64,000 nucleotides of DNA, taken from sequence record PP438435.1; one strand, 5' to 3'. This document shows, in pieces, positions 7,669 to 63,293 of this stretch (position 1 is the first letter of the stretch; the number at the start of each line of letters is the position of its first letter). A program made the position numbers and the translations under genes. The notes under the pieces are model-generated. The model was not told where the DNA came from. It saw only the letters and a program-made list of their open reading frames with translations, and made no database searches.

Positions 7669-7724
7669 CGGAAATGAGTGCGCGCTCGCCCCGGGCGCGC
7701 ACTCCCCACATGGAGGTGGAGAAC

Positions 7725-8390: not shown

Positions 8391-8552
8391 TCACGCCGCG
8401 GCGGTGCGCGGACGTCTGGCACGCTGGCACGTTGCGGCCAGAGCACCGGGGCGCGCAGGGCGCCTCGCTCGAGGGGCCCTGTCTATCCGTGTCCGTTGAC
8501 CCGCTCGCGTGGCGCAGCATCGCGCGGTTGGGGGGGCGCATCGCTTTTCCGC

Positions 8553-10560: not shown

Positions 10561-10606
10561 CTAGGCGCCTAGGGGGCATGCTCGCGGCAAGATAGCCTAG
10601 TGTCAA
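10561..10606 (-). promoter_or_regulatory. Putative dnaB promoter region with CTAGGCGCCTAG(G) operator
   Basis: Palindrome core at 10561-10573 (13/14 match to CCTAGGCGCCTAGG); minus-strand TTGACA at 10606-10601 followed by a CTAGGC half-site. -10 element not clear. Confidence 0.6.
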
Positions 10607-27172: not shown

Positions 27173-27253
27173 CTGCTCCAAGCAGATGACTTGGAGGCCC
27201 CCGCATGAGCGTTCGCAGCGACCAACCGATCCCTTGCTGTGGGGTGCACCCTC

Positions 27254-29421: not shown

Positions 29422-29463
29422 CGCATGCCCGCTTCCGCGGGCGCGGAATCAAGGAGAACGACG

Positions 29464-31150: not shown

Positions 31151-32899
31151 TCACGCAGCGTCGCGGGACGTGCCGCGTGCTGCTCGCTCCAGGAAGCGCG
31201 TGGCGATCGCGCGCAGGGCCGCGTGATTGGTGTCGACGCGCTCGAAGGGCTGCACTTCGGCGTTCAGCAGACCCTCGAGCTGCGTGTGCTTCAGGCCCAG
31301 CACGTCGGCCATGTAGGGGTCCATGCTGTCCTCCGCGTCGCTCAGCAGGAAGTAGGCGAGCACTGATTCCGTCTGCCCGTCGCGATCTACGCGCCCGATG
31401 CACTGCTTGATGACCGCAGGCGACCAGTCCAACTCTCCGAAGACAGCAACGTGGCTGACGGACTGCAGGCCGTCGAGGCCTGCACCTGAGCGCAGCGAGA
31501 CGATGAGCAGCTTGCTCTCGCCGCTCACAAACGCATTGCGCGCTGCGTCCTTCTGTTTTGGGGACTCGGAGCCGGTGTACCAGACGGGATTGAGGTCTCC
31601 CAACTGCTCACGCCAGATCTCGTAGACCTGGCGGTGCCAACCGAACAGGACGACGGGCTCTCCGGACTCGACCAGCATGCGGACGTAGGCTGCGACATGC
31701 GGCGCTTTGGCGATACCGGTGGCTTGCCGCATCAGCATGTCGAACTCGCCGGCTGCCTGCATGCGCTCGCCGCGGAACCGCTCCTGGCTCGAGAGGATGA
31801 CCTCAGCCAGCCTGACCGCGTCGCCTTGGATGGTTCGCAGGGCGTGCGGATCCGCATCAATGTACTGAATGCTCTGCATGACGGGCGGGAGCTCGCGCCC
31901 GACATCCGCGCGGGTGCGTCTCAACATCAGGCCCTGGCGCCGCAGATACGCACCTAGCGCGGCGGGGTCTGTAATCGCGAGTCCGTTGCCGGCGCTGGTG
32001 GTGCACCACTCGCGCTTGAACTCGTCGAGCGTGCCCAGCGCGTCGGCACTCGCCAGTGGCGTCAGCACATAGAAGGCTTCTGTCCCGTAGTTGTGGATTG
32101 GGGTAGCACTGAGTCCCAATCGATACGTGGCGCGTGCGGCGACGTGCGAGAACGCGCTGTAGATCTGCGTGCCGGGATTGCGCAGTTGCTGACATTCCTC
32201 AGCGATCACCAACTTGATCTGCCCGGCGAGCTCCGCGGCCCAGCCGCGCAGCATGTGGTAGCTGATCAGGAGCACGTCGGGAGGCGGTGCTGAGGCGTCG
32301 TGCCCACGCCCCCGGCGCCTGGGTAGCGAGTCGTCGAGTCCTTGCAGCGGGTACGGGGTGCCTTTCGTCACCGCGTGTACGCGCAGATGCGGGGCGAAAC
32401 GCTTCAGCTCGTGCCGCCACTGGGGCAGCAGGTGCGGGGGCGCTACGACCAGTGCTGGGAGAGCGCCCTGCAGCATCAGGCATCCGATGGCTGATGCGGT
32501 CTTGCCCAAGCCGAGGTCATCTGCAAGCAGCAGCCCCGCGCTGAGGCTAAGCGCGGTTGGAACCTCTGCTTGGTACGTCCGGAGCGGGATCGCTAGCGGG
32601 AGGTCGGCAAGGGGCGCGTGGTGGCCAGCGAGCAGGGCGGCGATGCGCGCTTCGCGGTCGATGTGGCGTGCTGCCTGCGCTTGCATATGGGCCCGCACCG
32701 CATCGGTAAGCGGGATCGGGAAGCGCTCAAGGAACCACAGGAGCTCGCGCGCATGCTCTGGCGTGTCGGAGAGCCAGAGCGTCCCGCTCACGTGTTGATT
32801 CATGCGGGGAAAGACGCGCTTGGCCCGCATGCGGAGGTCCGGCGGGAGTGTCAGGCCGTAACCCCGATCTGGGGTCAGTTCGATCGCAGGCGTCGTCAT
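31151..32899 (-). CDS. SNF2-family (SF2) helicase/ATPase
   Basis: LLADDLGLGKT, IAEECQQLRN (variant Walker B), LSATPIHN, GAGLDGLQ, QCIGRVDRDGQ; start could be 32977. Confidence 0.88.
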   Translation of the reverse strand: MTTPAIELTPDRGYGLTLPPDLRMRAKRVFPRMNQHVSGTLWLSDTPEHARELLWFLERFPIPLTDAVRAHMQAQAARHIDREARIAALLAGHHAPLADLPLAIPLRTYQAEVPTALSLSAGLLLADDLGLGKTASAIGCLMLQGALPALVVAPPHLLPQWRHELKRFAPHLRVHAVTKGTPYPLQGLDDSLPRRRGRGHDASAPPPDVLLISYHMLRGWAAELAGQIKLVIAEECQQLRNPGTQIYSAFSHVAARATYRLGLSATPIHNYGTEAFYVLTPLASADALGTLDEFKREWCTTSAGNGLAITDPAALGAYLRRQGLMLRRTRADVGRELPPVMQSIQYIDADPHALRTIQGDAVRLAEVILSSQERFRGERMQAAGEFDMLMRQATGIAKAPHVAAYVRMLVESGEPVVLFGWHRQVYEIWREQLGDLNPVWYTGSESPKQKDAARNAFVSGESKLLIVSLRSGAGLDGLQSVSHVAVFGELDWSPAVIKQCIGRVDRDGQTESVLAYFLLSDAEDSMDPYMADVLGLKHTQLEGLLNAEVQPFERVDTNHAALRAIATRFLERAARGTSRDAA

Positions 32900-32907
32900 A
32901 AGAGACC

Positions 32908-33252
32908 TCAGAACAGCGCTGGGAGTCGGACGACGCGAATGGCCGCCGTAGGGGTTGCGTCTGTGCGCCAGCGGCACGTCGTGGCGACGACCACGCTGTC
33001 GATGCCGGGCACGCGAAGGTAGCGCTGGGCCTGGGTGAGCGCTGCGCCCAGGGCGCCCTTCACCTTGAGCTCGATCGCCACATTCCCCGCCTTCAGGTCA
33101 AGACGCCCCGCCGGCGTGACGACTTGGCGCTCCACGGCGTAGCCGGCGATCGCGAGGCAGTGAGCGACCGCGTCCTCCAAGCGGCTTTCATCACTTCGCA
33201 GGAAGCGATGGCGGCTGAGGACGTTCATGATGGCTTCTGGCGACGTGTCCAT
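32908..33252 (-). CDS. Small PD-(D/E)xK nuclease-fold protein
   Basis: E...RQV...GRLDLKAGNVAIELKVKG...TQAQRY (D...ExK plus QxxxY). Confidence 0.75.
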   Translation of the reverse strand: MDTSPEAIMNVLSRHRFLRSDESRLEDAVAHCLAIAGYAVERQVVTPAGRLDLKAGNVAIELKVKGALGAALTQAQRYLRVPGIDSVVVATTCRWRTDATPTAAIRVVRLPALF

Positions 33253-44653: not shown

Positions 44654-45607
44654 TCAGGCGAGCGAGAGCGAGGTCGCGGCGGCGGGAAGCAGCGCGGGGT
44701 CGGTGTAGTTGATCGTCGCCGTGTGGCGGCTTGCGCGTCCGGGGCATTCGAGTGCGACCGAAAGTTCCGCGCCAAGGTCGCCGATCTCCACGCGCACGAT
44801 GTCGTACTGCGTGCAGAGCAGGAGCGCGCAGCGCTGGCTGCCGCTCACGAACCGCACCTCGAAGCTGTCTCCCAGCGCAGGGCTGGTGACGCCGGCGCTA
44901 TTGACCAGATGGTATGGGCCCTGCTCGCCCAAGCCGAGGTCACTCCACGTCGCGCTCAGCAGCGTGCACCCCGGCGAATCGTGCAGAGGACTGCGTCCCC
45001 GCATGGGCTGGCCATCTGCTGTACACGGGGCGACGTGGACGTACAGCCCGTCGGGCGAAACCGCGAGGTCCAGCTGGTAGACGGGCGCGGCGATGGCGGG
45101 CGCCGCGCCTGGCCGCAGCAGCAGGACGGTGTAGGCGCGGGAGTCGCGGTCGGGCAGGGGGACCGTCGGAAGGCGCACGGCAAGCGACTGCGGAGGAAGG
45201 CCGAGAGGCAGTGGTTCGGTGGCGAGCTGGGCGCGACGGCGCTCCTGGGCCATCTCGAGCTCGATGCGTAGGGCTTGCCGATCGACCGCGCTCGTAGCGG
45301 TCAGCGAGGCCCAGCAGGCGCTGGCGGCCTTGAAGAAGGCGCCTGCATAGTCCCTGTCCTCCAAGGGAAGCGCGCCGGTATCGGCATCCGCCAAGCGCGG
45401 CACCAGGCCATGGCCGGTCGCCAGCCAGTGAGGCGTGAGCTTCGTCAGGGCGGCATCCCAGCCGTGCGCGGCAATCGTGCTTTCGATGATGCGGTAGAGG
45501 GCACTCTTGTTTGGTGCGTCAAGGAGCGCGTCCCACAGCGCAAGGTCGCGTTCGGCGTTGAGCGCGCGAAGCCGGGGGTCCGTGTCGGGGCGATCGAAAG
45601 TGCTCAT
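44654..45607 (-). CDS. Hypothetical protein
   Basis: Coupled to the UvrD-like gene (4-nt overlap). Confidence 0.6.
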   Translation of the reverse strand: MSTFDRPDTDPRLRALNAERDLALWDALLDAPNKSALYRIIESTIAAHGWDAALTKLTPHWLATGHGLVPRLADADTGALPLEDRDYAGAFFKAASACWASLTATSAVDRQALRIELEMAQERRRAQLATEPLPLGLPPQSLAVRLPTVPLPDRDSRAYTVLLLRPGAAPAIAAPVYQLDLAVSPDGLYVHVAPCTADGQPMRGRSPLHDSPGCTLLSATWSDLGLGEQGPYHLVNSAGVTSPALGDSFEVRFVSGSQRCALLLCTQYDIVRVEIGDLGAELSVALECPGRASRHTATINYTDPALLPAAATSLSLA

Positions 45608-47421
45608 GGGGAGGGTGTTCCGTGTGCGAGGGGAGCGACAGCGGACCGCAGGTCGCGCCAGGCTTCGGCGCTGCTGCGTGCGTTGCGATACAGCGTGCTG
45701 ACCGCTGCGGTGAGCTCGGAGAGCTCCTCGGGCGAGAGTTGATCGCGCGTCAGGTGTGTAACGGCGTCCAGGGCTTCACCCATTGCCCGGGTGGCGTGTG
45801 CGAGGGCGTTGCGCACACGATCGACGGTGGGATCGCTCGCGGGCGGTGCCGGAATGGCGGGGGCGGCACCGTTGAGGCTGGAGGCAGCAGATGCTGCCCC
45901 GACGGGGTCCCCGCGGAGCGCGATGCTGATGGGGTGATCCGGGCGCGCCAAGGGATTGCCCGGATTCAGCGCTCGCAGGGTGTCCAGGTGCGCGAGGAAC
46001 GCACTACACCCGCTGACGTCCAGTGTTTTTTGCGCGCGGGTGACTGCGACGTAGAGCAGCCGGCTCTGCTCGGGTTCCCAGCGCGAGTTCTTGGGCTTCG
46101 GGCCTTGGATGTCCTCGACGGTGACCCCGACGAAGTCGTCGGTCAGCCGAACGTGGTCCCACTCCCGGCCCTTGGACTTGTGCGCGGTTGTGAGGATGAC
46201 ATCGGCGTTCTCTTCGTCGCGATCGGTCGGGTCCTTCGGGACCTGGTTGACCATTTTGCGTAACTCCGGCTCGGAGTATTCCTCCACCAGGTTCACCAAC
46301 ACTGCGAGGTCCTTGCCGGGCGGCGTCTTGGCGTACGTCACCACCTCATCCCAGTCGCGGAAGCCCGTCAGCTCTGCTGCGGTCGGCTTGCGGTTGTCCT
46401 GGAGCGCGTTGACCGAGTCCAGCAAGCGCACCAGGTCGGCCGTGCCACCGACGATCACGGCGCTCTGTTCGGCTTTGAGTGCCGCCGCCAGTTCGCCGAT
46501 CAGGCCCATGTTCGTGCGGGTCACGACAGTTCCCGCCTCGACGGTGTCGAGGCGGGTGTCCAGCGCGTCGAATCCGCGCAGGGTGATGTCTGGATCGAGC
46601 GCGCTCTGCAGGACGATGTTGGCCGCATCCGCGACACGCGGCCCGAAGCGGAAGCTCTGCGATAGCGTTGCTGTGGCGTCGAGTTTGAAGGCGCTCATGG
46701 CGTTGACAGCGCCGCGCCAACTGTAAATCTGTTGGTGGGAGTCACCGACGACAATGATCTGGCCGCGCTGTCTGGCAAACAGGTCGATGACGAGAGGCGT
46801 GGAGTCCTGCGCTTCGTCGAGTAGCAGCACATCCGCGCGCAGCTGGGGGTTGGTCAGCGCCCATAGCTTCAAGTAGACGTCATGCGTGACGGTCTGCTTC
46901 TGGGTGGCGCTCATGTCGGACATGGCGTCCCACAGGCGTCGCGCGGTTGAAAAGATCGCCCGCATGACGGGCGGGTCGTCGGCGAACGGCGCATGCGTTT
47001 CGTTGATCTCGCGATCCGCGCTCTGGCAGAAGGTGCTGATCGTCTGCAGGACGTAGTAGGCGCCGGTGACGGCGTCGAGGCCTGCGAAGTGGCGCGTGCT
47101 CCAGCCTTGTTCGGCTGCAAGAGCGCGCGGTGTCAGGGTGCCCAGGCGCTCGGCGTCCTTGAAGGCTTGGCCGTGTGTCGCCCACGCCAGGCCGTGGTTC
47201 GTCTTCGGCGTGACGTTGCGGGGCGCTGCTGCCTTGAAGTCTGCGACGTTCTTCTTGCCGAATGACGTGTAGAGCATCCGCCGCTTGGGCATCGCGTTCG
47301 CGATCAGCTTCAGCGTGCTCGTCTTGCCGGCGCCGGCGCGGGCTTCGATTCGGAGGCTTCGGCCTGCCGTGGCATGGGCGAGCGCCACCGCCTGCTCTTC
47401 CGTGGGCTTGAACGTAGTCAT
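45604..47421 (-). CDS. UvrD/Rep-family SF1A helicase
   Basis: ARAGAGKT, LDEAQD, VGDSHQQIYSWRGA, LSQSFRFG, TAHKSKGREW, LYVAVTRA. Confidence 0.92.
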   Translation of the reverse strand: MTTFKPTEEQAVALAHATAGRSLRIEARAGAGKTSTLKLIANAMPKRRMLYTSFGKKNVADFKAAAPRNVTPKTNHGLAWATHGQAFKDAERLGTLTPRALAAEQGWSTRHFAGLDAVTGAYYVLQTISTFCQSADREINETHAPFADDPPVMRAIFSTARRLWDAMSDMSATQKQTVTHDVYLKLWALTNPQLRADVLLLDEAQDSTPLVIDLFARQRGQIIVVGDSHQQIYSWRGAVNAMSAFKLDATATLSQSFRFGPRVADAANIVLQSALDPDITLRGFDALDTRLDTVEAGTVVTRTNMGLIGELAAALKAEQSAVIVGGTADLVRLLDSVNALQDNRKPTAAELTGFRDWDEVVTYAKTPPGKDLAVLVNLVEEYSEPELRKMVNQVPKDPTDRDEENADVILTTAHKSKGREWDHVRLTDDFVGVTVEDIQGPKPKNSRWEPEQSRLLYVAVTRAQKTLDVSGCSAFLAHLDTLRALNPGNPLARPDHPISIALRGDPVGAASAASSLNGAAPAIPAPPASDPTVDRVRNALAHATRAMGEALDAVTHLTRDQLSPEELSELTAAVSTLYRNARSSAEAWRDLRSAVAPLAHGTPSP

Positions 47422-50976: not shown

Positions 50977-53900
50977 ATGATCCAGTGGATTGATCTGTCC
51001 GCCCACGGCTTCCAGCTGCGCGGGGCGCAGCGCGAGGGCGAATCGCGCCGCGTCGTTGCTGTGCCTGATCCGATCGAGGCGGATCTGTCCGCGAGCGTTG
51101 TCGAGGGTCTCACGGGGCTCGGCTTCGAGCGCAGTGGCTGGCCCGCGGTGTGGCACCGCGAGGCGCGCGGGCTGTTGATGGCGCAGGTCCTTGGCCGCTT
51201 CCCTCAAGGTGTGCTGTCGCCGATCGCTGTGGAGGAGCTCTTCACAGCACCGTATCCGGACGGGCGTGACGGCTCGCCGCTGGGACGCTTGGCGGAGCTT
51301 CTGTCGGAACAGCGATCAGCGCCGAATGACATGCTTGGCACCGGCACGGCTTTGGTGCAGTTTCTTGCTGCTGCGCATCGTGAGTCCGGCGAGATCATCT
51401 GGGCGCGCTGGGCTGACGTCGAAACCATTGAAACCCTCGCCGCTGCCGATGCGCAGAGTATTGCGCGCTGGATGGAAGGCCAGCTGCGCATGCGGGCGGT
51501 GCGTACGTCGGACGACCCCGTACGCGATGTCGCCGATCCGGTTCTTGCAACACCGGAGCTGCGAGGGCGTAGCGGCTTCGAGCTGCGACGCGCACTAGAA
51601 GAGTGGAAACAGCATGTCGAAGCTCCGTTGTTGCGGACGCTTGACATTGACGAGGCCCGCATTCGCGATGTCGAAGCCTTGCTCGGCGAGACGCCGCGCG
51701 TTGAGCTCGCGCGGCACTGCGTTGGCGCGTCGAGGCGCGCGGTGGCTTTGGAGCGTGGCCGGCTCGAGGCGGCCGAGAAGCGCGCGTCGGACGCCGAGTT
51801 CGAGGCCGTTGTCGCTGAGTGGGGGCCGTACGTGTCGCCCAATGAGGGCGCGGATGTGCGAGGGCTGATGATTGAGGCGGGCCTGGATCCCGAGGGTCTG
51901 GCGGTCGCGCTTGAAGACGGCGAGCTTCGCGCGCTCAGGCCCGCAGATTCGGGTGCGGTTGCGTTCTTCGGTCGCGCGAGCGAGATGCTGGGCTGGACGG
52001 TCACGAGCACCGCCAGCCTGCCGATGTCGATCGTGACGGCTTCGCGGGAGGTGGCCGCGCGGGTGGTCGCGCGGCGTGACGCCGCGGCGAATGTGGGGCC
52101 GGTGGTGCTCTTGCAGCAGGCTGGTGGCAAGGTCCTGGCGCTGGATGAGCGCTTTGTCCGCCTGATCGAAGCAATGGCGCCCGGTGGGACGTGGCGCGGC
52201 CCGGACCGCACCGAGCAGGAGCACGCGGTCGCGTGGGGCGGCGGTGGCGTGGCGTACGAGCGTGACGGGGCGCTCGTGGCTATGTTGGCGCCCTTGCGCC
52301 ACATCGTGGCGCAGTGCGATAGGCAACTGCCTGAGATCCTGGCGCGCGCAGCGGCAGGTTTCCCCGATCGTGCGCGGCCTGCCGCTGCTCTCGCTGCGGA
52401 CGGCGCTGTGTACCGAGGCGCGCCTCTTGGCGCGCCGCCGGCGGCGCGCGTGGATCTGGATGTGTCGGCATGGCTGCCCCCAACGGTGCAGTCTGGCGCG
52501 AGCACCTTCGTTACGGTGATGTACGTCGGCGTGCCGGCCGACGTTGCGCAGCGCGCCGAGAGTGCGCATGACGCAGGTGTGTCCGTGCCCTGGGCCGAGA
52601 TCGAGTCGCTTTCGTATGGGCGCGTGTTGCGGGATGTCGAAGACGGGCATCCGGTTCCGTTTGCGGGTGAGGTGCTGCCAGACCGCGTGGTTGTCGGCTG
52701 GCGCCGATCCGACCTGCAGACCACTCTCAACCAACTGCGCAATCGGCGAGCCTACCCGGACACCACGTGGTTCCTGGAGGCCGCGCCCGGCGCCGCGCCG
52801 GTGCTGGAAGTCCACGTTCCGTTCGTTCGGGAGCGCGCGTCGACCTACAAGGAGCGGGTGATTATCCCCGCCCACGAAGACCAGTCGCTGATCATTCTGC
52901 GGCGACCTGTCGACGCCGAGACGTGGAGCTCTGCCGGCGTGTTCGAGCCGGTGCCGGCCCGTGGGCTCGCCGACGATGCGTTGGAGCGCGGCCTGGTGCG
53001 TGTGGCGCATGCGGACGATCCGGCAATCGCTCAGGCTGTGTCTGCATGGGAAGCGCAGCGTTCTGCGGAGGACCTGGACGCGGAGCTCGTGTCGCCGGAC
53101 GACAGCTCGGTTGCGTCGGAGGCCGACGGCCCCGACAGCGATGCCGACGACGAGGCAGAGGAGTCGCGCCCCCCCGAGGGGAAAGCCCGCATCGAGGACT
53201 TCGGCGAGAAGATCGGAGGCGCGCGCAAGGACATCAACGGCTTGGGATCACGCGCCCTTGAAGTCGCAATGACGGAGACGTGGACCAGCGACGAGCTGCG
53301 CGAGTACCTGACCAAGGATCGCCTCTGGCCGTTCTCGGTCAAACAGCGACTCGCTGAGGGTGCCGAACCAGGCGTCGTCGCGCTGGAGAAGGACGTCCGC
53401 GATTACGTGCGTCCGGAGTACCACCGTGTCGGCCGCGGGACGCGCGGCAACGTGCTCGCATGGGACGATGCCGCGGCTCGGCGCTGGGCATCGGGTGTAC
53501 GCGTCATGGCGAGCGTCTTCGAGGGTGTGAAGACGGTCGCTGAACTGAAGGCGCGCGCCAGCGCCGCCTTCGATGCCGCAAACCCCGTGGCTCGGGCACG
53601 CCTTGCACTGACGGAAGGGGTGAACCTGCGCCGCTACCGCGACTACTGGCGTAACTGGGTAGGGGGCTTGGCCGCGCAGGACGAGTCTGTGCGCTTCCGC
53701 GTGGTTGGCCAGATCGAGGCGAGCGGCCGCGTCCTCATGGCGCGCCGCGAGCGCAACGAGAACCGGCGTGATGTGCGCGAGCAGGTCAAGCTCGCGCGTC
53801 CGGAAAAGGGCAAGGCGCCGCGCATCAGCGAGCGCCCGCATCTGGCGGAAATCGGCCGGGTCGGCCCCGAGGTGCGGAGCGGTAACGTCACCCCCGAGTT

Positions 53901-56475
53901 GCTGGCGACGACCTTCGGGTTCCGCGGCGGCGAGTTCGGGAACTGGCTGGGACAGAAGGAGCGCCAGGAGGTCCTCAACTTCGCGTTCGAGTCCCTGCAC
54001 GATCTGGCGCGTGTGCTGGGCATCCCAGCCAGTGCCGTCAGCTTGAACGGCGAGCTTGCGATCGCGTTTGGCGCACGCGGCACTGGCGGCAAGCGCTCGG
54101 CGGCCGCGCACTACGAGACGGGTCGGCGCGTCATCAATCTCACCCGCATGAACGGCGCCGGCTCACTGGCGCACGAGTTCGCGCATGCGTTCGATCACTA
54201 TGTCGCCCGGACCCTGGCGCCGGATCTCGGCCGCGTGTTCGTCACCGAGAGCGGCGGCGATGTCACCGGCTATCGACTGCGCGGGTCGGGGCTTCGTGAG
54301 GAGGTCGCGCGGGCAATTGCCGGCGTGGTCCAGTCCTTGTTCTGGTATCGACCGTCCGATGAAGAGCGCGTCGCCGCCTCGCGTTCCGAGGCCGTCGCTG
54401 CGATGGATGAGATCCAGCGGCTGTGGCAACTTCCGCTGGCCCATCCGGAGAAGGCGCTGGCCTGGCAGGTCTTTGGTGGCAACGACGCGATCGTGCTTGC
54501 GGATACGCGGGTAGCGGCGGGCGTGCAAGCGGTTAACCTCGCGTTCATGAGGCTCTGTGATGAGCTGCGCGAGGGGCTGGCGACGCTCGAAAAGGCACGC
54601 GCGATGCTGGATGACGCGCCGACCGCGGCCGGCGAGCTGGTCGCCGAGGCTGGGCAGCGGGTCTACGAGGCGCAGCGCGCGATCACGGCAGCGTGGGACG
54701 AAAATCGCAAGGAGCCGAATGAGGCTCTGCGTCAGATTGCACCGCACCTCCGGCTGCAGTGTGCCGGTGGGTACGCTTCCAGTGCCGCCGATCGCGTTCA
54801 GCGGCGCATCAATGAGTGGCAAGCCCTGATCGTGCGGCTCGCGACGGGCAGCATCACGTCCGAGTATCAGACCCAGTATCTGCGGGACGCCCTCGCGATC
54901 GACGAGTTTGAGCAGCGAAAGCCTGCGTACTGGGCGCAGCCGATCGAGCTGTTTGCGCGTGCTTTCGAGAGCTGGGTGTTCGATCGCCTGCAGGAGAAGG
55001 GCCAGCACTCGGACTACCTGGTGCACGGCGTCGAGGACAAGGGGTACACGCTGGCCGAGCACGGCGCCGCGGTCAACGCAGGCGATGTGCGAGATCCCGA
55101 AAGCGGCCGCGGCCTCTTCCCGTATCCGCGCGGCGTCGAACGTGCTCGCATCAATGCTGCCTTTGACGCGCTGGCCGGCGCCCTGAAGCACGAGGTGACA
55201 CCGGAAGGGCATTGCAAGCTGTATCAGCGCCGCCCCAGCCCGCTGGGCGCAGGGCAGGGGATGTCGGTGGAGGCGGTGGTGCGCGCCGTGCATCGCTTCC
55301 GTGATGCGCTGGCCAACACGTGCGGGGTCGAGGTCGTGGCGCAGGTCGAGGACCTTCCTGCGCCGGCGCCAGCCGATGTTGCTGGTCTCTTCGACGTCCC
55401 GACCCGTACGGTGTATCTGGTGGCGGCGAATCTGCGTTCCCCGGGCGAGGTGAATGCGACGCTGACCCACGAGATCTTGCGCCACGCGGGGCTGTTCGCC
55501 CTCTTGGGCGAGCACAAGGAATCGGTGCTGGAATCGATCTGGGCGGACAACCCGAGCGTCCGCCAGCGGGCCGACGCTCTGCGGTCGGAGGGCATCGAAG
55601 AAGGTATCGTCTTCTCGCGCACAGAGGCGACCGAGGAAGCGCTGGCGCAGCTCGCCGATGAAGGCGCACTGGTCAGGCTTTCGACCTGGGGGCGCGCTGC
55701 AGCGTGGATCCGATCGGCAATCCGGGACGTGGGCCTGGGGTCGCTCGTGGGGCGCTGGGATGATCGGGACGTGGCGTATCTCGTCAGTCGCGCTGCACGC
55801 GCGTCGGGCCTGCGGCCGCACACGTTGCCGACGGCGGGCAGCGCGACGCCGGATGGGTGGATGATGCGGTTCCTGGAGGCGCCCCGCCGCGCACTCACCG
55901 CAGGGGCTTTCCTGGGCTCGATGCTGGGTGCCGGTGTGCTGTCGGGGCTGCAGCCGGCGCCGCCGCGCAGCGACCCGTACCAGCCTCCCCTGAGCTGGCC
56001 CGAGATCTACGCGCCGGAGTGTGTGGCCGACAGCGCGGCGCGAGAAGACACCGCCCGGCGTTGGGCCCGTTTCGGCATGCCAGCCGAAGCCTTCAGTGCG
56101 GAGGTGCGCTCTGGGTTGATGTCCGACATCGAGCGGGCGCGCGCCGCGCTTGAGGGAGAGGCAGATCGCATCCATGCGCGATTCGACGCGGTGGAGGAGG
56201 CTCTGATGAAGCGCGTGGAGTCGGGCGACCCGCTGGTCGCTCGCGCCGCGCGGGTGCAACTGGAGAGCGCGCGCTCTGCGAGAGACGAAGCGTACAGCGC
56301 TGCATCGAGCCAGGTGTTCGGCAACGTCGATGCGCAGGTGCTCGCAGCGTTGAATGCGCAGTGCCGGGAAATCGCGGACGCGTACGCGCCGCCGGTGCGG
56401 TGGCCGGATCCGAGGGAGATGGAAGCCCTCGAGGACGAGTCCGCGGCCGCGTCTGTACGCTCGCCGTCGCTGTGA
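50977..56475 (+). CDS. Large polyvalent protein with LPD1-associated zincin metallopeptidase and a second HE-motif peptidase-like domain
   Basis: RIEDFGEKIGGARKD; FGFRGGEFGNW...IAFGARG...AAAHYE...INLTRMNGAGSLAHEFAHAFDHY; YWAQPIELFARAFE; LTHEILRHAGL. Confidence 0.82.
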   Translation: MIQWIDLSAHGFQLRGAQREGESRRVVAVPDPIEADLSASVVEGLTGLGFERSGWPAVWHREARGLLMAQVLGRFPQGVLSPIAVEELFTAPYPDGRDGSPLGRLAELLSEQRSAPNDMLGTGTALVQFLAAAHRESGEIIWARWADVETIETLAAADAQSIARWMEGQLRMRAVRTSDDPVRDVADPVLATPELRGRSGFELRRALEEWKQHVEAPLLRTLDIDEARIRDVEALLGETPRVELARHCVGASRRAVALERGRLEAAEKRASDAEFEAVVAEWGPYVSPNEGADVRGLMIEAGLDPEGLAVALEDGELRALRPADSGAVAFFGRASEMLGWTVTSTASLPMSIVTASREVAARVVARRDAAANVGPVVLLQQAGGKVLALDERFVRLIEAMAPGGTWRGPDRTEQEHAVAWGGGGVAYERDGALVAMLAPLRHIVAQCDRQLPEILARAAAGFPDRARPAAALAADGAVYRGAPLGAPPAARVDLDVSAWLPPTVQSGASTFVTVMYVGVPADVAQRAESAHDAGVSVPWAEIESLSYGRVLRDVEDGHPVPFAGEVLPDRVVVGWRRSDLQTTLNQLRNRRAYPDTTWFLEAAPGAAPVLEVHVPFVRERASTYKERVIIPAHEDQSLIILRRPVDAETWSSAGVFEPVPARGLADDALERGLVRVAHADDPAIAQAVSAWEAQRSAEDLDAELVSPDDSSVASEADGPDSDADDEAEESRPPEGKARIEDFGEKIGGARKDINGLGSRALEVAMTETWTSDELREYLTKDRLWPFSVKQRLAEGAEPGVVALEKDVRDYVRPEYHRVGRGTRGNVLAWDDAAARRWASGVRVMASVFEGVKTVAELKARASAAFDAANPVARARLALTEGVNLRRYRDYWRNWVGGLAAQDESVRFRVVGQIEASGRVLMARRERNENRRDVREQVKLARPEKGKAPRISERPHLAEIGRVGPEVRSGNVTPELLATTFGFRGGEFGNWLGQKERQEVLNFAFESLHDLARVLGIPASAVSLNGELAIAFGARGTGGKRSAAAHYETGRRVINLTRMNGAGSLAHEFAHAFDHYVARTLAPDLGRVFVTESGGDVTGYRLRGSGLREEVARAIAGVVQSLFWYRPSDEERVAASRSEAVAAMDEIQRLWQLPLAHPEKALAWQVFGGNDAIVLADTRVAAGVQAVNLAFMRLCDELREGLATLEKARAMLDDAPTAAGELVAEAGQRVYEAQRAITAAWDENRKEPNEALRQIAPHLRLQCAGGYASSAADRVQRRINEWQALIVRLATGSITSEYQTQYLRDALAIDEFEQRKPAYWAQPIELFARAFESWVFDRLQEKGQHSDYLVHGVEDKGYTLAEHGAAVNAGDVRDPESGRGLFPYPRGVERARINAAFDALAGALKHEVTPEGHCKLYQRRPSPLGAGQGMSVEAVVRAVHRFRDALANTCGVEVVAQVEDLPAPAPADVAGLFDVPTRTVYLVAANLRSPGEVNATLTHEILRHAGLFALLGEHKESVLESIWADNPSVRQRADALRSEGIEEGIVFSRTEATEEALAQLADEGALVRLSTWGRAAAWIRSAIRDVGLGSLVGRWDDRDVAYLVSRAARASGLRPHTLPTAGSATPDGWMMRFLEAPRRALTAGAFLGSMLGAGVLSGLQPAPPRSDPYQPPLSWPEIYAPECVADSAAREDTARRWARFGMPAEAFSAEVRSGLMSDIERARAALEGEADRIHARFDAVEEALMKRVESGDPLVARAARVQLESARSARDEAYSAASSQVFGNVDAQVLAALNAQCREIADAYAPPVRWPDPREMEALEDESAAASVRSPSL

Positions 56476-56479
56476 ACTG

Positions 56480-56532
56480 AACACGCCACCCGGTGGGCCC
56501 GCAGGCGCGAGGGGTCCACCGGGTGGCGTGTT
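56480..56532. repeat. 17-bp perfect inverted repeat between the two giant genes
   Basis: AACACGCCACCCGGTGG / CCACCGGGTGGCGTGTT with 19-nt loop. Confidence 0.85.
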
Positions 56533-56648
56533 GCTGTGGGCGTTCTGAAAGCGTTGGGTCGCGGGCCTCACCCTTGCCGTGTGGGCGTATTGGATACATG
56601 ATGCGCCTATGCCCCGCAGGAAGCGGGGCGGTCATGCAAGGACGCCCC

Positions 56649-59600
56649 ATGTCGACTCCCGCTCTCGAAACCGTCAAGTGGTTCGATCTCTCTTCCTACA
56701 GCCTCACGCTGATGCTGATGCGCGGCGACCAGGGCAAATCTTGGTTGCTCGCCTACGGGGCTGTCGACGCGCATGCGCAGGCTCTGGAGCGTCTGGGGAT
56801 GCGGCCGCATCCTCAGACGCCGGGATCGTGGTTCCGCGGGTTCGGCGCCGGGCAGACGCTGCGCGCGCAGGACGTCGCTGCGGCGTTCCCGGAGGTCAAG
56901 TACGTGGAGCTGCCCCGTGGCCGAGTCGTCGTCGAAACGCTGGCATCTCAGCGCACGGCGTCGAGCGAGCCGGCAGCCATCTCCAGGGCGCCGGCGGCAC
57001 AGCAGCGGAGCGAGTTCGGGCGGATGGTTGCGCGGGTCCTCGCACAGTCCGGGCTCGTCGTCTCGGACGAGCGAGCGGAGATGCGCCTCTATGGCGATGT
57101 GTCGCAGCCCGCGGTGCGGTTGCAGTCCAGCACCGCAGACGCGGCGCTACGGCTGCGCATCGAGCGTCTCGGCGCGGGGCGCACGGTGATGGGGTCGGTG
57201 GTGGCTCAGCTGGATGGCGCAGGACAGTGGCATGTGTCCGGGGCGTCGACGTGGACAGGCGCCTCCGGCTATCGCGATGCCGCCGACACCCTGGGCGCGA
57301 TGGCGCTGATGCGGGCCCTTGTCGAGGCAGGGCTGGCGTCGCAAGCGCCCGCGTTCGCCGCCGACTTCGTCGAGGTGGACGAGACCATTTCGTCCGACGT
57401 CGTCGGCCGACCCTTCAAGCTCGAGACCTCCGGTGGCGCGGTGGCGACGGCGTGGGTCACGGCATACAGCGTCGCGGGTGGCCGCCAATGGCTCGATGTC
57501 ACTTTCGAGGACGACATGGGGCGGCCGCGACTGCGGGTCGCCGCCTTCGAGCGGGCGCCGGGGCGCACTGTGGAACTGTGCGTTGCCGAAGCGCTTCAGA
57601 GCGCGGAAGCTGCGCTGCCCGTGGGTGCATGGCGCGCCCCGGACCAACCCGCCCCGCGGCGCGTCGCGCGCTCGACAACTGCGTGGCTTCAGGAGACTGG
57701 CAATGAGCTCGAATCCCCGCGTGCGTCCCCTGCACGAACTGATACCCCCCGCGTCGACGCCGGAAGCGCTGGCCCAGCTGGATCTGGAGATGCTGATGGC
57801 AGCCGGCGACCCGGCCGCGGCGATCGCGAACTCGGTGACGGCGTCGCCGACGCAGGCGACGCCGGTCTGGCAGGAGGATCTGACGAATCAGATCTACGAG
57901 AAGCTGCTGGCGTCGAATCCGCCAGACCCGACGCTGACGTACGAGGCGCGGTTGATGCACATGGCGAAGCTGATGGAGGAGGCGCGGGAGCACGCCCGCA
58001 GCAGTGGTCTGCCGTCGCGGGGCGCGACGCAGGTCGCCGCCGCCGTCTTGGCGGCCCGAGCAGCGCCCCGCGAGGATCAGACCACCGACTGAGTGCGGTT
58101 CCAGCAGAGGTTAGCTTCAACCACGCGCGGGCGACCGAAGCGAATATGGCGGCGCTGCGCGCGCTGAAGCGCATTGAGCAGCGGCCTGCGGGCGAGGACG
58201 CCGACCCCGAGGATCTTGCAGCGGTCTCGCGCTACATTGGCTGGGGCGGCCTGCCGCAGGTGTTTGCGCGTCATAGCGACTTGCACCGTGCCTTCCATGA
58301 TGAGCTGCAGTCCCTTCTGAGCGAGTCCGAATACGAGGCCGCGAAGGCTTCCACGCTCAATGCCCATTTCACCGCTTACCCGGTCATTGATGGCATCTGG
58401 CAGGCGCTGCAGCACCTGGGCGTGCGCGAGGGCGTGGGCCTGGAGCCGGGTGCCGGCGTTGGGCGGTTCATCGGCCGACGCCCGGAGGCGCTGTCGGAGT
58501 CGGTCGAGTTCGTCGCGGTCGAACAGGACGGTGTGTCGGCGCGAATCCTGAAAGCGCTGTATCCGGCGGCACAGGTGCATGCCGTGGGCTACGAGCGCAC
58601 GGCCATCCCCGACGGCAGCGTCGACTTCGTGGTGGGCAACGTCCCATTTGGCGCGTACAGCGTCTACGACCCGCGCTACAAGACGTTGCGCGCCCCCATC
58701 CACGACTACTTCATCGTCAAGAGCCTGGACAAGCTGGCGCCCGGTGGCGTGATGGCGGTGATCACGTCCACGGGCACGCTGGACAAGCAGAGCCCGACGG
58801 CGCGCGAGGCCATGTACGCGAGTGCGGATCTGCTGGGCGCGTTTCGCATGCCTGGCACCACGTTCCGGGACAACGCGGGCACCGACGTCACCACCGACCT
58901 GCTGGTGTTTCGCAAGCGGCTTCCGGATGACGTGGCGCAACCGTTCGATTGGCGCGATCTCGTGTCCATGAAGGGTGCCGACGACAGCGAAATCGCCGTC
59001 AACCGAATCTTCCAGGGTGCGAAGGACGGCAATTCGCGAGGCGTCGTGTTGGGCTGGCTCGTCAGCGATCGGAGCCAGTACGGCCGCGAGCGCGTGGTGG
59101 CTACCCATCGGCATCCCAAGAGTCGCGAGGAAGCGCTGCCCGTGGGCCGATGGCCAGAGGTGTACCGCAAGGTGCTCCCTGCGGGCGTCCACGCGCCCAT
59201 CGACACGCCCCAGGAGCAGCCGCTGCTGTCACCCGCGGACATGGCCACCAACGCCGCGCGCGAAGGGCGCTACGTGGTGGAAGACGGACGCGTGTGCTGC
59301 ATCTACGAAGGCCAACCGGTGGCGTTGCCGGGCCTGAGTCGCCTGGATGAGTCGCGCCTACGGCTGATGATTCCGGTGCGCGACACCCTGCGCGCGCTTG
59401 TCGACGAGCAGCTCGTGGGGTGCTCGGACGAGCGCTTGGCGGAGTTGCAGGCGCGGTTGAACGCGGCCTACGACGCTTTTGTCGGGACACATGGGCCAAT
59501 GTCGCGGCCTGCGAATCGCCGGCCATGGATCGATGATCCGGACGCGATGCTGGTGCTGGCTGCGGAGGTGTACGACGCGGACTCGAATACCGCAACACGC

Positions 59601-62600
59601 GCTGCAATCTTCAGTGAGCGGACGCTCGGTCCACGCCAAGCGGCAGCGACGGTGGAGTCCCCCACGGAAGCGCTCACGTTGTGCATCAACGAACTGGGGC
59701 GTGTGGACCCCGCGCGCATCGAGGCGCTGAGCGGAAAGCCCTGGGAGAGCGTGCGCGAAGCCTTGCGCGGCGAGATCTTCTTCGACCCCGAGATCGGGCG
59801 CTGGGATCTGGCGGCGCGCTATCTGTCCGGGCACATCCCGCGCAAGCTCGACATCGCGCGCAGCGCAGCCGAGACCGACCCTTCGATCGCGGAGAACGTG
59901 GCAGCGCTCGAAGCCCGTCTGCCGCGGCGTGTTGTCGCCGAGGAGATCGATGTCACGCTCGGCAGCCCGTGGGTCGGTGCCGACTATGTGCAGGCATTCG
60001 CGCAGGAGGTGCTCGGCGGCATCGTGCCTACCGTGCTCCACAACCCCTCGATCGCGTCGTGGCGCGTCGAGGGCGCCAAGTCAGGAGCGCCGACGCGCTG
60101 GAGCACCCAGCGCATGGATGCGTGGCGGCTGCTTGAGCTCGCGTTGAATGGGCAGTCTCCGCAGGTGTGGGACTCGATCGAGGTCAAGGGCAGCGAAGTG
60201 CGCGTCCTGAACACTGAGCAGACAGCGCTCGCGATCGAGATGCAGAAGCAGATGAAGCATGAGTTCGCGGGTTGGATCTTCCGCGACAGTGAGCGTCGGG
60301 CGAAGCTCGAAGACCGGTACAACTACCTCTTCAATGGCTACCGCAGCCCGGACTACTCCGGGCTCAAGCTGCGCGTGCCGGGCCTTGCGCTGGGCATGGC
60401 GTATCGCGATCACCAGACGACGGGGATTGCGCGCGGGGTGCTGGAGCAGAATACGCTGTTGGCGCACCCGGTGGGGTTCGGCAAGACCGCGACAATCGCT
60501 GGCACGGTCATGCTGGGGCGCTCGCTCGGCATCATCAACAAAGCCGGCATCGTGACGCCGAAGAATGTCATCTATCAGTTCGCCGCGGAGATCGTGCGGT
60601 TCTTCCCGAACGCGCGGGTACTCACCATTCGCCCGGAAGACTTGAGCCGAAAGGGCCGCGCGCAGTTCTGGCGGCGCGTGCAGGTGTCGAATCCGGACGT
60701 GATCCTCGTGACTCCGGAGGCCTTCAAGCGACTTCGACTGCCGGCAGAGGCCGAGCGGCGCTATCTCGCTGAAGAGCTGGCCCGGATCGACATGGCGCTG
60801 GCGTGGGAGGCCGAGGTCAATGGCAGCAAGAGCAGCAAGTCTGCGACGCGTGAAGTCAAGCGCCTGGAGCGGCTGAAGCAGGGCATGAAGGCGCGGCTTG
60901 AGCGACTGCTGAACCTGGATGAGAAGGACGACAACCGCATCTCGCTGAAGGATCTCGGCGTCGACGCTCTGTGCGTGGATGAAGCGCATCGCTACAAGAA
61001 CCTGCAGGTGGTGTCGCGAGAGCGCGTGCTGGGCGTGCCCACGGCGGCGAGCCAGCGCGCCTCCGATATGCACTCGAAGGTGCGCTACATCCAGAACATG
61101 GGCGGCCGCGTCGTCTTCGCCACCGGCAGCTTCATCACCAACACGCTCGCCGAGGCGTTCAACGTCCAGCGCTACCTGATGCAGGACGAGATGGAGGCCC
61201 AGGGTGTCGGCTTCTTCGACGCCTGGAAGGCGCAGTACGCGCACGTGGTCGGCTCGTTGGAGCCGGATCCGGGTGGTTCGGGCTATCGAACTGTGTCGCG
61301 CATGGCAGAGCTGCGCAATGTTCCCGAGTTGGTGGCCATGCTGGCGCAGGTTGTCGATGCTGTGGCGGACGACGCCTCGAAAGTCGGGGGTCGCCCCGAT
61401 CCGGTGTTCGTCACGCGCAGCGTCGAACCCACTGAGCTGCAGGCGCTCTATCGTGAAGCGCTGGCCGAGCGCGTCACCTTCATGCGTCAGCATCCAGCAG
61501 AGGCCAAGAAAGCCGGAGACAACATCCTCGTCGTCCTGGGCGACGCGCGGCGCAGCGCGCTTGACCTGCGCGCGCAGTTCCCGCATGCGCCGGCAGCCGC
61601 ATCCGGCGGGAAGCTCGCTGCTGTGGCTGCCGACATCCACGAGCGCTATGTGGCGTCGCAGGATCGCTTGGGGACACAGGCAGTGTTCCTTGACTTCGCG
61701 ACCCCGCCGTCGAGCAAGAAGCTCGATCGCGGTTGGAACGCATACGAAGAGCTCACCGCGAGGCTGGTCGCCCTCGGCATCCCGCGCGAGGAGATCGGGT
61801 GGGCGCACGACGCCAAGAACGACAAGGCGAAGGCGGAGCTCTTTCAGCGCGTCAAGCGTGGCGAGCTGCGCGTCGTGATCGGCTCTACGGAGAAGATGGG
61901 GGAGGGCACGAACATGCAGGATCGCATGGTGGCTATCCATCACCTGAACGCGCCGCATCACCCGGGGCACATCGTGCAGCGCAATGGACGTGGCATTCGC
62001 TTCGGCAACCTCAACACCTCGATCGCCATCTGCACGTGGGTGACCAAGGGGCTGCTGGAGGACTGGAACTGGCACCTCGTCACCCTGAAAGACGGCTTCA
62101 TTCGGCAGGTGACGGAAGGGCTCGCAGCGCACAGCGATGGCCAGGGCCTGGCGCGGCGCATTGTCGAGGATTCGGCGGCCATGTCGTTTGCGGACATCGA
62201 AGCGCACGCGTCGGACAACCCGCTGGTGAAGGACAAGGCCGTGATCGACGAACGTGTCCAGCGGCTGGAGATGCTGGAGCGCGCCGATGGGCAGGACCGC
62301 GGTGCTGCTCGCTCGGAGCTGAGCTTTTTGGAATCGAGCATTGCGAGTGACATGCGCGCTATCGAGCTCGCGACCGATTTCGCGGAGCAGGCCAAGATTC
62401 ACAGCGAGGAGGCGGAAGCCGCCCTTCTGCAAGAAGCGCGGAAGGGCGCGTCGGAACGCGTCGAGCGCATTTACGAGGGAGAGGTCGAACTCGCACAGGC
62501 CGATCCGCAGGCGTTGGCCAAGGCGCAGGCCGGTCGCAAAGAACGCTATCGGCTGATCGAGGAAGAGACGTTCGCGATGCGCGTGCGCGGTGTCGCACAG

Positions 62601-63293
62601 TTGGGGCGCGTTGCTGCAGGCAAGGCGCTGATCCGCGAGGTGGAGCGCATCAGCGGTAAGTTCGCCGCACGCGCCCCGTCCGTTGCGGAGTACAAGGGCG
62701 CGGCTATCAACCTGGTGCCGACGTATGCCGAGCCGAAGATCGAGATGTCATGTCGCGGCGTTGCGGCGAAGGTGACGACGGAGACCTCTGCAGATCCGGT
62801 CGGTATCGTTCGGCGCATCGAGAACCTTCATGCACAGATCGTGCGGGAGGCGGATGAGCTTGTGGCTCGCGTCGCTTCACGGCGGGAGAAAATGGCGGAG
62901 ATCCAAGCGCGCCTCGATGCGCCCTGGGGACACCGCCAGGAGCTGATGGATGCCCGGATCGAGCAGTCGCGCATCAATACCGAGCTTGCTGTGATGAACG
63001 AAGGTCAGGTCAAGGAGCCGCATGGCGCTGCGCTTGAGCGGTTCCTCCAGGCGTTCGAGGCGGCGGGCGGGGTGTTGCCTGTCGCGATGGAGGGCGCGGC
63101 GCCGACAGCCTTCGATGAGTTCGATTTCGAGGCCTTCAGTCTGGCCGAGGACGCCGCCGAAGAGGAGGAGGCCGAGGATGAAGGCTCCGAGCTGGGCGAA
63201 GCGGGTGAAACTGCGGCGTGCGACACTGATGAGGAGGATGCGTGCGGAGCCGCTGAACAGGTTCCGCGCGGCAAGCAGATTGCCATGGCATAA
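56649..63293 (+). CDS. DarB-like giant N6-adenine DNA methyltransferase / SNF2 helicase polyvalent protein
   Basis: YIGWGGL, LEPGAGVGRF (motif I), VGNVPFG (motif IV), AHPVGFGKT, VDEAHRYKN, GEGTNMQ, QRNGRGIRFGN; AAGGA RBS before ATG 56649. Confidence 0.9.
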   Translation: MSTPALETVKWFDLSSYSLTLMLMRGDQGKSWLLAYGAVDAHAQALERLGMRPHPQTPGSWFRGFGAGQTLRAQDVAAAFPEVKYVELPRGRVVVETLASQRTASSEPAAISRAPAAQQRSEFGRMVARVLAQSGLVVSDERAEMRLYGDVSQPAVRLQSSTADAALRLRIERLGAGRTVMGSVVAQLDGAGQWHVSGASTWTGASGYRDAADTLGAMALMRALVEAGLASQAPAFAADFVEVDETISSDVVGRPFKLETSGGAVATAWVTAYSVAGGRQWLDVTFEDDMGRPRLRVAAFERAPGRTVELCVAEALQSAEAALPVGAWRAPDQPAPRRVARSTTAWLQETGNELESPRASPARTDTPRVDAGSAGPAGSGDADGSRRPGRGDRELGDGVADAGDAGLAGGSDESDLREAAGVESARPDADVRGAVDAHGEADGGGAGARPQQWSAVAGRDAGRRRRLGGPSSAPRGSDHRLSAVPAEVSFNHARATEANMAALRALKRIEQRPAGEDADPEDLAAVSRYIGWGGLPQVFARHSDLHRAFHDELQSLLSESEYEAAKASTLNAHFTAYPVIDGIWQALQHLGVREGVGLEPGAGVGRFIGRRPEALSESVEFVAVEQDGVSARILKALYPAAQVHAVGYERTAIPDGSVDFVVGNVPFGAYSVYDPRYKTLRAPIHDYFIVKSLDKLAPGGVMAVITSTGTLDKQSPTAREAMYASADLLGAFRMPGTTFRDNAGTDVTTDLLVFRKRLPDDVAQPFDWRDLVSMKGADDSEIAVNRIFQGAKDGNSRGVVLGWLVSDRSQYGRERVVATHRHPKSREEALPVGRWPEVYRKVLPAGVHAPIDTPQEQPLLSPADMATNAAREGRYVVEDGRVCCIYEGQPVALPGLSRLDESRLRLMIPVRDTLRALVDEQLVGCSDERLAELQARLNAAYDAFVGTHGPMSRPANRRPWIDDPDAMLVLAAEVYDADSNTATRAAIFSERTLGPRQAAATVESPTEALTLCINELGRVDPARIEALSGKPWESVREALRGEIFFDPEIGRWDLAARYLSGHIPRKLDIARSAAETDPSIAENVAALEARLPRRVVAEEIDVTLGSPWVGADYVQAFAQEVLGGIVPTVLHNPSIASWRVEGAKSGAPTRWSTQRMDAWRLLELALNGQSPQVWDSIEVKGSEVRVLNTEQTALAIEMQKQMKHEFAGWIFRDSERRAKLEDRYNYLFNGYRSPDYSGLKLRVPGLALGMAYRDHQTTGIARGVLEQNTLLAHPVGFGKTATIAGTVMLGRSLGIINKAGIVTPKNVIYQFAAEIVRFFPNARVLTIRPEDLSRKGRAQFWRRVQVSNPDVILVTPEAFKRLRLPAEAERRYLAEELARIDMALAWEAEVNGSKSSKSATREVKRLERLKQGMKARLERLLNLDEKDDNRISLKDLGVDALCVDEAHRYKNLQVVSRERVLGVPTAASQRASDMHSKVRYIQNMGGRVVFATGSFITNTLAEAFNVQRYLMQDEMEAQGVGFFDAWKAQYAHVVGSLEPDPGGSGYRTVSRMAELRNVPELVAMLAQVVDAVADDASKVGGRPDPVFVTRSVEPTELQALYREALAERVTFMRQHPAEAKKAGDNILVVLGDARRSALDLRAQFPHAPAAASGGKLAAVAADIHERYVASQDRLGTQAVFLDFATPPSSKKLDRGWNAYEELTARLVALGIPREEIGWAHDAKNDKAKAELFQRVKRGELRVVIGSTEKMGEGTNMQDRMVAIHHLNAPHHPGHIVQRNGRGIRFGNLNTSIAICTWVTKGLLEDWNWHLVTLKDGFIRQVTEGLAAHSDGQGLARRIVEDSAAMSFADIEAHASDNPLVKDKAVIDERVQRLEMLERADGQDRGAARSELSFLESSIASDMRAIELATDFAEQAKIHSEEAEAALLQEARKGASERVERIYEGEVELAQADPQALAKAQAGRKERYRLIEEETFAMRVRGVAQLGRVAAGKALIREVERISGKFAARAPSVAEYKGAAINLVPTYAEPKIEMSCRGVAAKVTTETSADPVGIVRRIENLHAQIVREADELVARVASRREKMAEIQARLDAPWGHRQELMDARIEQSRINTELAVMNEGQVKEPHGAALERFLQAFEAAGGVLPVAMEGAAPTAFDEFDFEAFSLAEDAAEEEEAEDEGSELGEAGETAACDTDEEDACGAAEQVPRGKQIAMA
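57703..58092 (+). CDS. Nested 129-aa gene in the +1 frame of the DarB-like gene
   Basis: AGGAG RBS 7 nt before ATG; canonical GC3 codons in this frame while the host frame reads as a G/D/A/R-rich linker. Confidence 0.75.
   Translation: MSSNPRVRPLHELIPPASTPEALAQLDLEMLMAAGDPAAAIANSVTASPTQATPVWQEDLTNQIYEKLLASNPPDPTLTYEARLMHMAKLMEEAREHARSSGLPSRGATQVAAAVLAARAAPREDQTTD

Follow-up and report, generated by a model that had tools for sequence, protein, structure and literature searches.

A candidate gene nested in the interdomain spacer of a giant DarB-like protein gene from a conjugative-element-like DNA

Does a single segment inside a giant gene of a mobile element encode a second, independent protein in another frame of the same strand? 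This question is raised by a locus in the first 64 kb (64,000 nucleotides) of sequence record PP438435.1, the whole of which we refer to as the window. On its plus strand, a giant gene at 56649..63293 (GenBank XAI97101.1, 'hypothetical protein', 2214 aa) contains a further open reading frame (ORF), which we call Y, at 57703..58092 in the +1 frame, and an initial annotation of this DNA had proposed Y as a complete nested gene with both frames in use. We put the probability at roughly 0.8 that 57703-58092 is a real, independently initiated gene lying in the +1 frame of the spacer between domain X and the enzyme part of a giant polyvalent protein, in an element resembling a conjugative plasmid or an integrative and conjugative element (ICE). 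As judged from sequence comparison, the segment very probably encodes two proteins, and both frames appear to be kept by selection, Y for its protein and the giant frame for its continuity only.

The frame of the giant gene, with codons beginning at positions divisible by 3, is referred to as F0. In the ORF listing it is without a stop over 56493-63293, and the start in GenBank is the ATG at 56649. The protein is ordered as an N-terminal domain X (56649..57701, plus strand), an interdomain spacer (57702..58091, plus strand, 130 codons, sharing its bases with Y) and a DarB-like methylase/SNF2-helicase part (58092..63293, plus strand). Y lies from start to stop within this longer same-strand ORF in the other frame, and consists of 129 sense codons followed by the stop codon TGA at 58090-58092. 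A Shine-Dalgarno-like AGGAG at 57691..57695 (plus strand) is located seven bases 5' of its ATG at 57703. These signals agree with the initial annotation, in which 58092 denoted the last base of the stop codon. The nested gene fills exactly the interdomain gap, its start standing just past X and its stop codon falling within the first conserved motif of the DarB-like part. GenBank lists only the giant ORF and has nothing entered for the nested frame, as had been expected of standard annotation.

The use of codons changes frame at precisely this place. The guanine plus cytosine (GC) content at codon positions 1/2/3 of Y is 0.70/0.53/0.88, whereas the third-position GC content (GC3) of F0 is 0.48 in the spacer compared with about 0.85 in both flanks (0.85 in domain X). 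In a GC3 frame plot, F0 has the coding pattern over 56500-57700, the +1 frame over 57700-58100, and F0 again from 58150. The codon-usage score over the spacer is 0.39 for the Y frame and -0.15 for F0, and elsewhere in the giant gene F0 windows score 0.34 +/- 0.07 and +1 windows -0.14 +/- 0.14. When 21 long genes of the window were scanned, 57669-58088 was the sole segment where another same-strand frame outscored the frame of the gene itself. The initial remark that codons are canonical in the nested frame and odd at the third positions of F0 is borne out by these values. Over the same bases, the F0 reading is stop-free and of low complexity, also as initially described; 85% of its residues are G/A/D/R/S/P/E, and the residues are not conserved.

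The same arrangement was found in relatives of the locus. We compared 11 loci, namely the window and ten homologous loci, which comprise a near set (L001, L005-L009) and a distant set (L011-L014); the seven near-clade sequences are the window and the near-set loci, and L010, being identical to L007, was left out as a separate locus. A +1-frame ORF of 73-129 codons is present at the same place in every giant-gene relative with a long spacer (11/11 loci), over a range of identity in the enzyme part from 95% to about 49%. In all 11 loci the ORF begins with ATG, preceded at a distance of 6-10 bases by four or more bases of the AGGAGG core, and in most loci its stop lies in the first conserved enzyme motif. 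The switch of GC3 between frames is also seen in each of the four distant loci, and the length differences from locus to locus are all multiples of three. In an alignment of 12 Y sequences, columns M1, P74, A94, R95 and S105 are invariant and L60, E96, G102, L103 and P104 nearly so. The residues of Y, its ATG, its ribosome-binding site and its stop thus all appear conserved. As a negative control, the short-spacer homologue L018 has no Y-like ORF in its spacer or within 13.7 kb.

Substitutions between these loci also follow the nested frame. In the closest pair they number 26/16/31 at Y codon positions 1/2/3, a phase opposite to that predicted by a model in which only the host frame is constrained. 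Nonsynonymous change relative to synonymous change (dN/dS) was estimated by our own script with a simplified OLGenie-type estimator (method in PMC7531306). Using an alignment in the frame of Y, dN/dS of Y was 0.49 (bootstrap 95% interval 0.26-0.87) in the closest pair and, over five close sequences, 0.59 (0.42-0.81), and the host frame gave 1.3-1.5 over the Y segment. As a control, we realigned the sequences in the host frame and repeated the estimate in windows sliding along the gene. Here F0 dN/dS was 0.09-0.25 in X and the enzyme part (0.18-0.24 in domain X) and about 1.0 in the spacer, and F0-synonymous divergence was 0.40 in the spacer compared with 0.8-1.9 in the flanks, which is a drop of about threefold. 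Such a frame-specific comparison had been proposed with the initial annotation, and its outcome favors the nested gene.

The cleanest test, which is not circular, was a comparison of profiles, in which a hidden Markov model (HMM) of the near-clade Y sequences was used to search the distant loci, cut into pieces in all six frames. The +1 spacer piece was the top match in each distant locus (E = 2e-12, 2e-10, 9e-8 and 0.03), and in the reverse search the distant Y profile recovered all seven near loci. In contrast, when these bases were read in F0, the HMMs built from them scored only -12 to +6 bits across clades. Over long divergence, therefore, the nested frame alone appears to be conserved as protein in this segment, contrary to the initial concern that homologues might conserve only the DarB frame. 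These sequence comparisons point to purifying selection on the Y frame.

Four other explanations of the segment were weighed. Gene callers split the region into three on short contigs, the F0 codon usage in the spacer resembles that of non-coding DNA, and enzyme-only homologues of about 1642 aa exist elsewhere, all of which would suit three separate genes, with X ending near 57700, Y being an ordinary small gene, the enzyme starting independently, and the open F0 being accidental and untranslated. However, F0 is stop-free across Y in 11/11 loci, with 2-9 stops in the third frame over the same segment. When the synonymous codons of Y were resampled, the chance of an open F0 per locus was 0.03-0.28 in seven loci and 0.22-0.41 in four; the joint chance would be about 1e-10 were the loci independent, a figure that overstates the case because the loci are related, but its direction is still clear. 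Moreover, no start codon belonging to the enzyme part itself is conserved. The conserved sequence of this part begins 5' of the next in-frame ATG, at 58146, as initially noted; this ATG is no start codon in L001, the GTG of L001 is none in the window, and both are inside conserved protein sequence. Domain X is without its own stop in any locus, and the short-spacer homologue fuses X straight to the enzyme part in one frame. Three separate genes are thus improbable, and the host frame appears to be functional across the overlap, its openness but not its residues being selected, so that the spacer residues would drift freely. The opposite idea makes the Y segment a part of the giant protein, reached by a +1 shift near 57700 and left by a shift back before 58090, or created by two compensating indels, an error that had been feared initially. 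It would agree with the normal codon usage of the Y frame between flanks in F0. The DNA of the region is 100% identical in three contigs from other, independent public runs, and because these assemblies agree base for base, sequencing error is excluded; ten more assemblies, all diverged, share this frame layout, making 11 independent assemblies with that of the window. In several loci (L006, L007 and L012) a +1-frame stop stands just 1-6 codons 5' of the ATG of Y, which leaves no room for a conserved shift site and rules out ribosome entry into Y by frameshifting. In addition, the stop of Y itself is conserved, and such a model does not require F0 to be open. We find this explanation hardly credible.

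The +1 ORF could also be a by-product of chance and composition in a Gly/Ala/Asp/Arg-rich spacer of 66% GC DNA, with no Y protein made. With the spacer residues fixed and the codons resampled, the +1 frame is stop-free with a probability of 0.93 in the window and 0.25-0.91 in the relatives, and in alternative frames the giant gene has twelve other open stretches that reach 100 codons or more. Because of these stop-free probabilities (0.25-0.93 per locus), the openness of the +1 frame was dropped as evidence. A drifting spacer, however, should show GC-rich third positions, whereas the F0 GC3 is 0.48 and the three-base periodicity fits Y. The threefold constraint on F0-synonymous sites relative to the flanks, the ATG, Shine-Dalgarno core and stop position conserved in 11 loci, the profiles that cross clades in the Y frame and not in F0, and the confidently predicted fold of Y (described below) likewise make mere composition quite improbable, and the evidence from the comparison of loci goes far past what chance would give. 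Lowered synonymous variation alone cannot separate coding from non-coding constraint, and a structured RNA or a binding or transfer site in the DNA would produce it without a second protein. Such an element would not be expected to leave codon periodicity in the phase of Y, as seen in both the substitutions and the GC content, or length differences in multiples of three, or a conserved start, ribosome-binding site and stop, and protein-level similarity persists where DNA identity is only about 55%. Judged by these coding features, constraint of this non-coding kind is very improbable.

Several points nevertheless weigh against a nested gene. The open +1 frame is expected by chance from the composition of the spacer. 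Y evolves fast, with 73% identity where the enzyme part is 95% identical, and since the loci are related, probabilities multiplied over them overstate significance. The estimator is a simplified re-implementation of OLGenie and not the published program, and the alignment behind the Y dN/dS of 0.49-0.59 was built in the frame of Y; on the host-frame alignment, the +1 dN/dS of 0.54 in the spacer is only moderately under the method background of 0.65-1.0. For L011, one of the distant loci, the match to the Y profile is only marginal (E = 0.03). With the two frames aligned one at a time, identity is higher for Y than for F0 in just 22/55 pairs, because self-alignment of the low-complexity spacer inflates F0 identity at long range; per-frame pairwise identity, being misled in this way, was therefore replaced by the profile comparison. 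Finally, translation of either frame through the segment is inferred from selection.

The predicted product of Y has 129 residues, is acidic (pI 4.96), and has no cysteine and a polar, proline-rich N-terminus. AlphaFold2 (6 sequences) gave a predicted local distance difference test score (pLDDT) of 80-96 over residues 51-120, with helices at 57-71, 80-99 and 106-120 (pLDDT 88-96), and left the N-terminal 50 residues uncertain. The three-helix C-terminal half (residues 55-120) would be encoded by 57865..58062 (plus strand) and includes L60, P74, A94, R95, E96 and G102-S105. Nothing significant was found for Y in Pfam, NCBIfam, PHROGs, PDB sequence profiles, or Foldseek against PDB and BFVD, and the window Y protein matched no Pfam family at E <= 1. 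The likeness to TnpV mentioned in the initial annotation was not supported, none of the 12 Y members having a TnpV match in Pfam and none being found in NCBIfam. Known small partners of secretion or anti-restriction systems, such as the type IVB adaptors IcmS/IcmW and the DNA mimics ArdA/Ocr, gave no sequence or fold match in these databases, with PADLOC not scanned.

Searches of larger collections with the 129-aa product, as had been proposed, likewise returned the clade of Y itself and no outside family. A word-indexed search of 5.8 billion proteins found only this clade, and an exhaustive search of 1.84 billion representatives found the clade and one repeat protein of 849 residues (P0123), which matched in seven stretches and was judged spurious. 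Scans of GTDB genomes gave no matches, a scan of JGI metagenomes gave only a duplicate of L007, and tblastn against plasmids and phages gave only the source record. The database entries for Y all come from contigs of 541-2103 bases, which are too short for the giant ORF. Y is never shown by annotation because callers miss it when the giant ORF is intact, and entries come only from short contigs. On the basis of these searches and the structure model, the product of Y appears to be an orphan acidic protein whose C-terminal half is predicted to form three helices.

How might such a gene be used? Ribosomes would start at the internal Shine-Dalgarno sequence and ATG on the mRNA of the giant gene, so that Y would be co-transcribed and always co-inherited with the giant protein, and the spacer would serve as a flexible tether, with Y dictating its sequence. 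Y might also work with the giant protein as a partner in its folding, assembly or transfer, or as a regulator. This is the weakest step of the proposed mechanism, and we regard it as tentative and somewhat doubtful; its sole basis is the strict co-occurrence over long divergence together with the small, acidic and helical nature of Y. A more specific version, in which Y is a dedicated partner of a giant transferred enzyme, for example an adaptor or chaperone presenting the enzyme to the Dot/Icm-type coupling complex of this element, or a brake on it in the donor cell, is unlikely as it stands. The roles of chaperone, inhibitor or delivery adaptor put forward in the initial annotation were guesses and are not supported. 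If it were true, the location of the Y gene inside the spacer of the enzyme would keep the pair inseparable in recombination, and the spacers of giant polyvalent proteins would be a general nursery of hidden genes. As for origin, X and the enzyme part may have fused by read-through of a pre-existing Y gene in another frame.

Embedded genes of this architecture are known from other systems, among them the Rz/Rz1 spanin genes of phage lambda (PMC6139136, PMC5295617). Y resembles Rz1 in that the whole gene, its own start included, is contained in a second gene of the same strand and is read in the +1 frame. Rz and Rz1 are co-transcribed and their products cooperate, whereas for Y and the giant protein a partnership is only inferred. 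Rz1, a lipoprotein of the outer membrane, carries a signal sequence and a lipobox, whereas Y has neither a cysteine nor a signal-like N-terminus and does not resemble an o-spanin. The host gene also differs, Rz being a lysis protein and the host of Y a 2214-aa anti-restriction-type enzyme whose frame appears unconstrained in its residues over the overlap.

A second parallel is comS of Bacillus subtilis, an out-of-frame gene within srfA, the gene for surfactin synthetase (PMC12915044). In both cases a giant multidomain gene conceals a small gene, regulatory in the case of comS, in another of its frames, and the products are, or in the case of Y would be, transcriptionally coupled. With a length of tens of codons, comS is much shorter, and what it overlaps is an enzymatic module and not a spacer. 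Y, with its 73-129 codons, is confined to the interdomain spacer and has no sequence relation to ComS, as it matches no family. Small viruses and phages have overprinted genes in which, typically, one of the overlapping frames encodes disordered sequence (review PMC8227390; method PMC7531306). The likeness here is that one frame is predicted to be folded and is conserved, that the other is of low complexity, and that synonymous change in the host frame is suppressed. Unlike small-virus overprinting, Y lies in an element of about 209 kb without obvious genome-size pressure, and it is the nested product that appears structured and conserved and the spacer of the host that drifts.

The giant gene itself is related to the methylase-helicase dyad of polyvalent proteins that includes DarB of phage P1 (PMC5512222), and in the text of that paper (PMC5512222) the words 'overlapping', 'frameshift' and 'linker' are all absent. 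The two share a homologous enzyme part, and, like the dyad, the present gene adjoins an LPD1 polyvalent protein in a mobile element; the extra domain X and the long spacer are specific to the present clade, unlike P1 DarB and the dyad. P1 requires small accessory proteins to load DarB into capsids, which is an analogy only for Y. Taken by sequence, Y appears to belong to a known embedded-gene architecture but to none of these protein families, and the combination of a giant polyvalent host of anti-restriction type, an exact fit to the interdomain spacer and an orphan product is distinctive. A literature search found no paper relevantly pairing polyvalent proteins with overlapping genes.

To our knowledge, well-supported long overlapping genes on the same strand are few in bacteria and mobile elements, and many of the claims have been disputed. 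The case of Y rests on eleven diverged loci with a clear asymmetric signature of selection. It suggests that an interdomain spacer tolerating any sequence can house a whole second gene, and it offers the giant polyvalent proteins of plasmids and phages as a concrete place to seek hidden genes. DarB-like anti-restriction modules, which affect the passage of mobile DNA across restriction barriers, would also gain an uncharacterised component that is strictly linked to them.

The assignment of the host as DarB-like, made in the initial annotation, is supported by tblastn. The enzyme part has 30-35% identity over 98% of its first 800 residues to proteins annotated 'DarB-like antirestriction', and 33% identity to P1 darB over residues 88-283 (E = 5e-18). 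The helicase portion of the window protein was matched by Helicase_C (E = 1.4e-4) and by the SNF2-like domain of DrmD (E = 6e-5), both weakly, and homologues carry precomputed SNF2-rel_dom, ResIII and Helicase_dom domains. These similarities support the host gene as a DarB-like methylase-helicase dyad, to which anti-restriction activity is assigned by homology alone. Using the first 400 residues of the enzyme part as query, we obtained a graded series of homologues from 95% down to about 49% identical, and all the full-length homologues returned have the same domain X, then a low-complexity stretch, then the enzyme part. The full-length giant homologues (2101-2217 aa) are called as single proteins with precomputed PF28553/PF28554/PF28555. 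Domain X is present and conserved in all giant-gene homologues compared, and had zero matches in Pfam, NCBIfam and PHROG.

With respect to the element as a whole, PP438435.1 (1-208985) is labelled 'Dolichospermum phage Dfl-JY45', a cyanophage, and our literature search found no paper on this source record. None of its 226 coding sequences is annotated as capsid, terminase, portal or tail. The first 64 kb have a GC content of 65.6%, and the record encodes a DotM_C protein (10603-11961, minus strand), a TraG-D_C coupling protein of the TraG/TraD type, a type IV pilus set (secretin, PilO, two T2SSE ATPases, T2SSF and prepilin) and a topoisomerase. Because of the GC content, the lack of any annotated virion gene, and the DotM-like, TraG/TraD-type, pilus and topoisomerase genes, PP438435.1 looks like a conjugative plasmid or ICE of the IncI/Dot-Icm type from a high-GC bacterium and not like a cyanophage. 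This agrees with the conjugative setting assumed in the initial annotation.

Directly upstream of the giant gene, a plus-strand gene at 50977..56475 encodes a polyvalent protein of 1832 aa with an LPD1 domain (E = 5e-20). This neighbour is syntenic in L006-L009, L012, L014 and L018, and the synteny of the LPD1 gene and the giant gene in those loci suggests a conserved two-gene module. On the 3' side, an AbiEii-domain gene (7544-8395) directly follows the giant gene in L014, and in the other loci the genes 3' of the giant gene are without a recorded family, save a weak Big_1 (L008) and an ankyrin-repeat (L018) match. The window also holds genes for a C-5 cytosine methylase (27239-28855), a DUF5131 protein (29425-30558), a separate SNF2-family helicase (31151-32977) and a UvrD-like helicase (45604-47421), and the element therefore has several DNA-modification and helicase genes beyond the DarB-like one.

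Some minor features of the giant gene and its borders were also noted. A frame-2 ORF at 56579-57706 (plus strand, 375 codons) was considered as a true upstream gene and rejected, its GC3 being only 0.56-0.57 and F0 being the coding frame there. It ends in an ATGA overlap with the start of Y, an overlap that is not conserved among the relatives, and it is called as a gene on a short public contig (L002 2-679), which illustrates how gene callers mis-split the region once the giant ORF is cut short. On the 5' side of the annotated ATG at 56649, F0 is open for a further 52 codons (56493-56648) from a GTG at 56493, only 18 bases past the stop of the upstream gene; the annotated start is probably right because homologues begin at the position of that ATG. 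At the other end, the last 56 bases of the giant gene (63238-63293) overlap the next annotated gene (63238-64020), and a comparable overlap of 52 bases is called in L005 (6871-6922).

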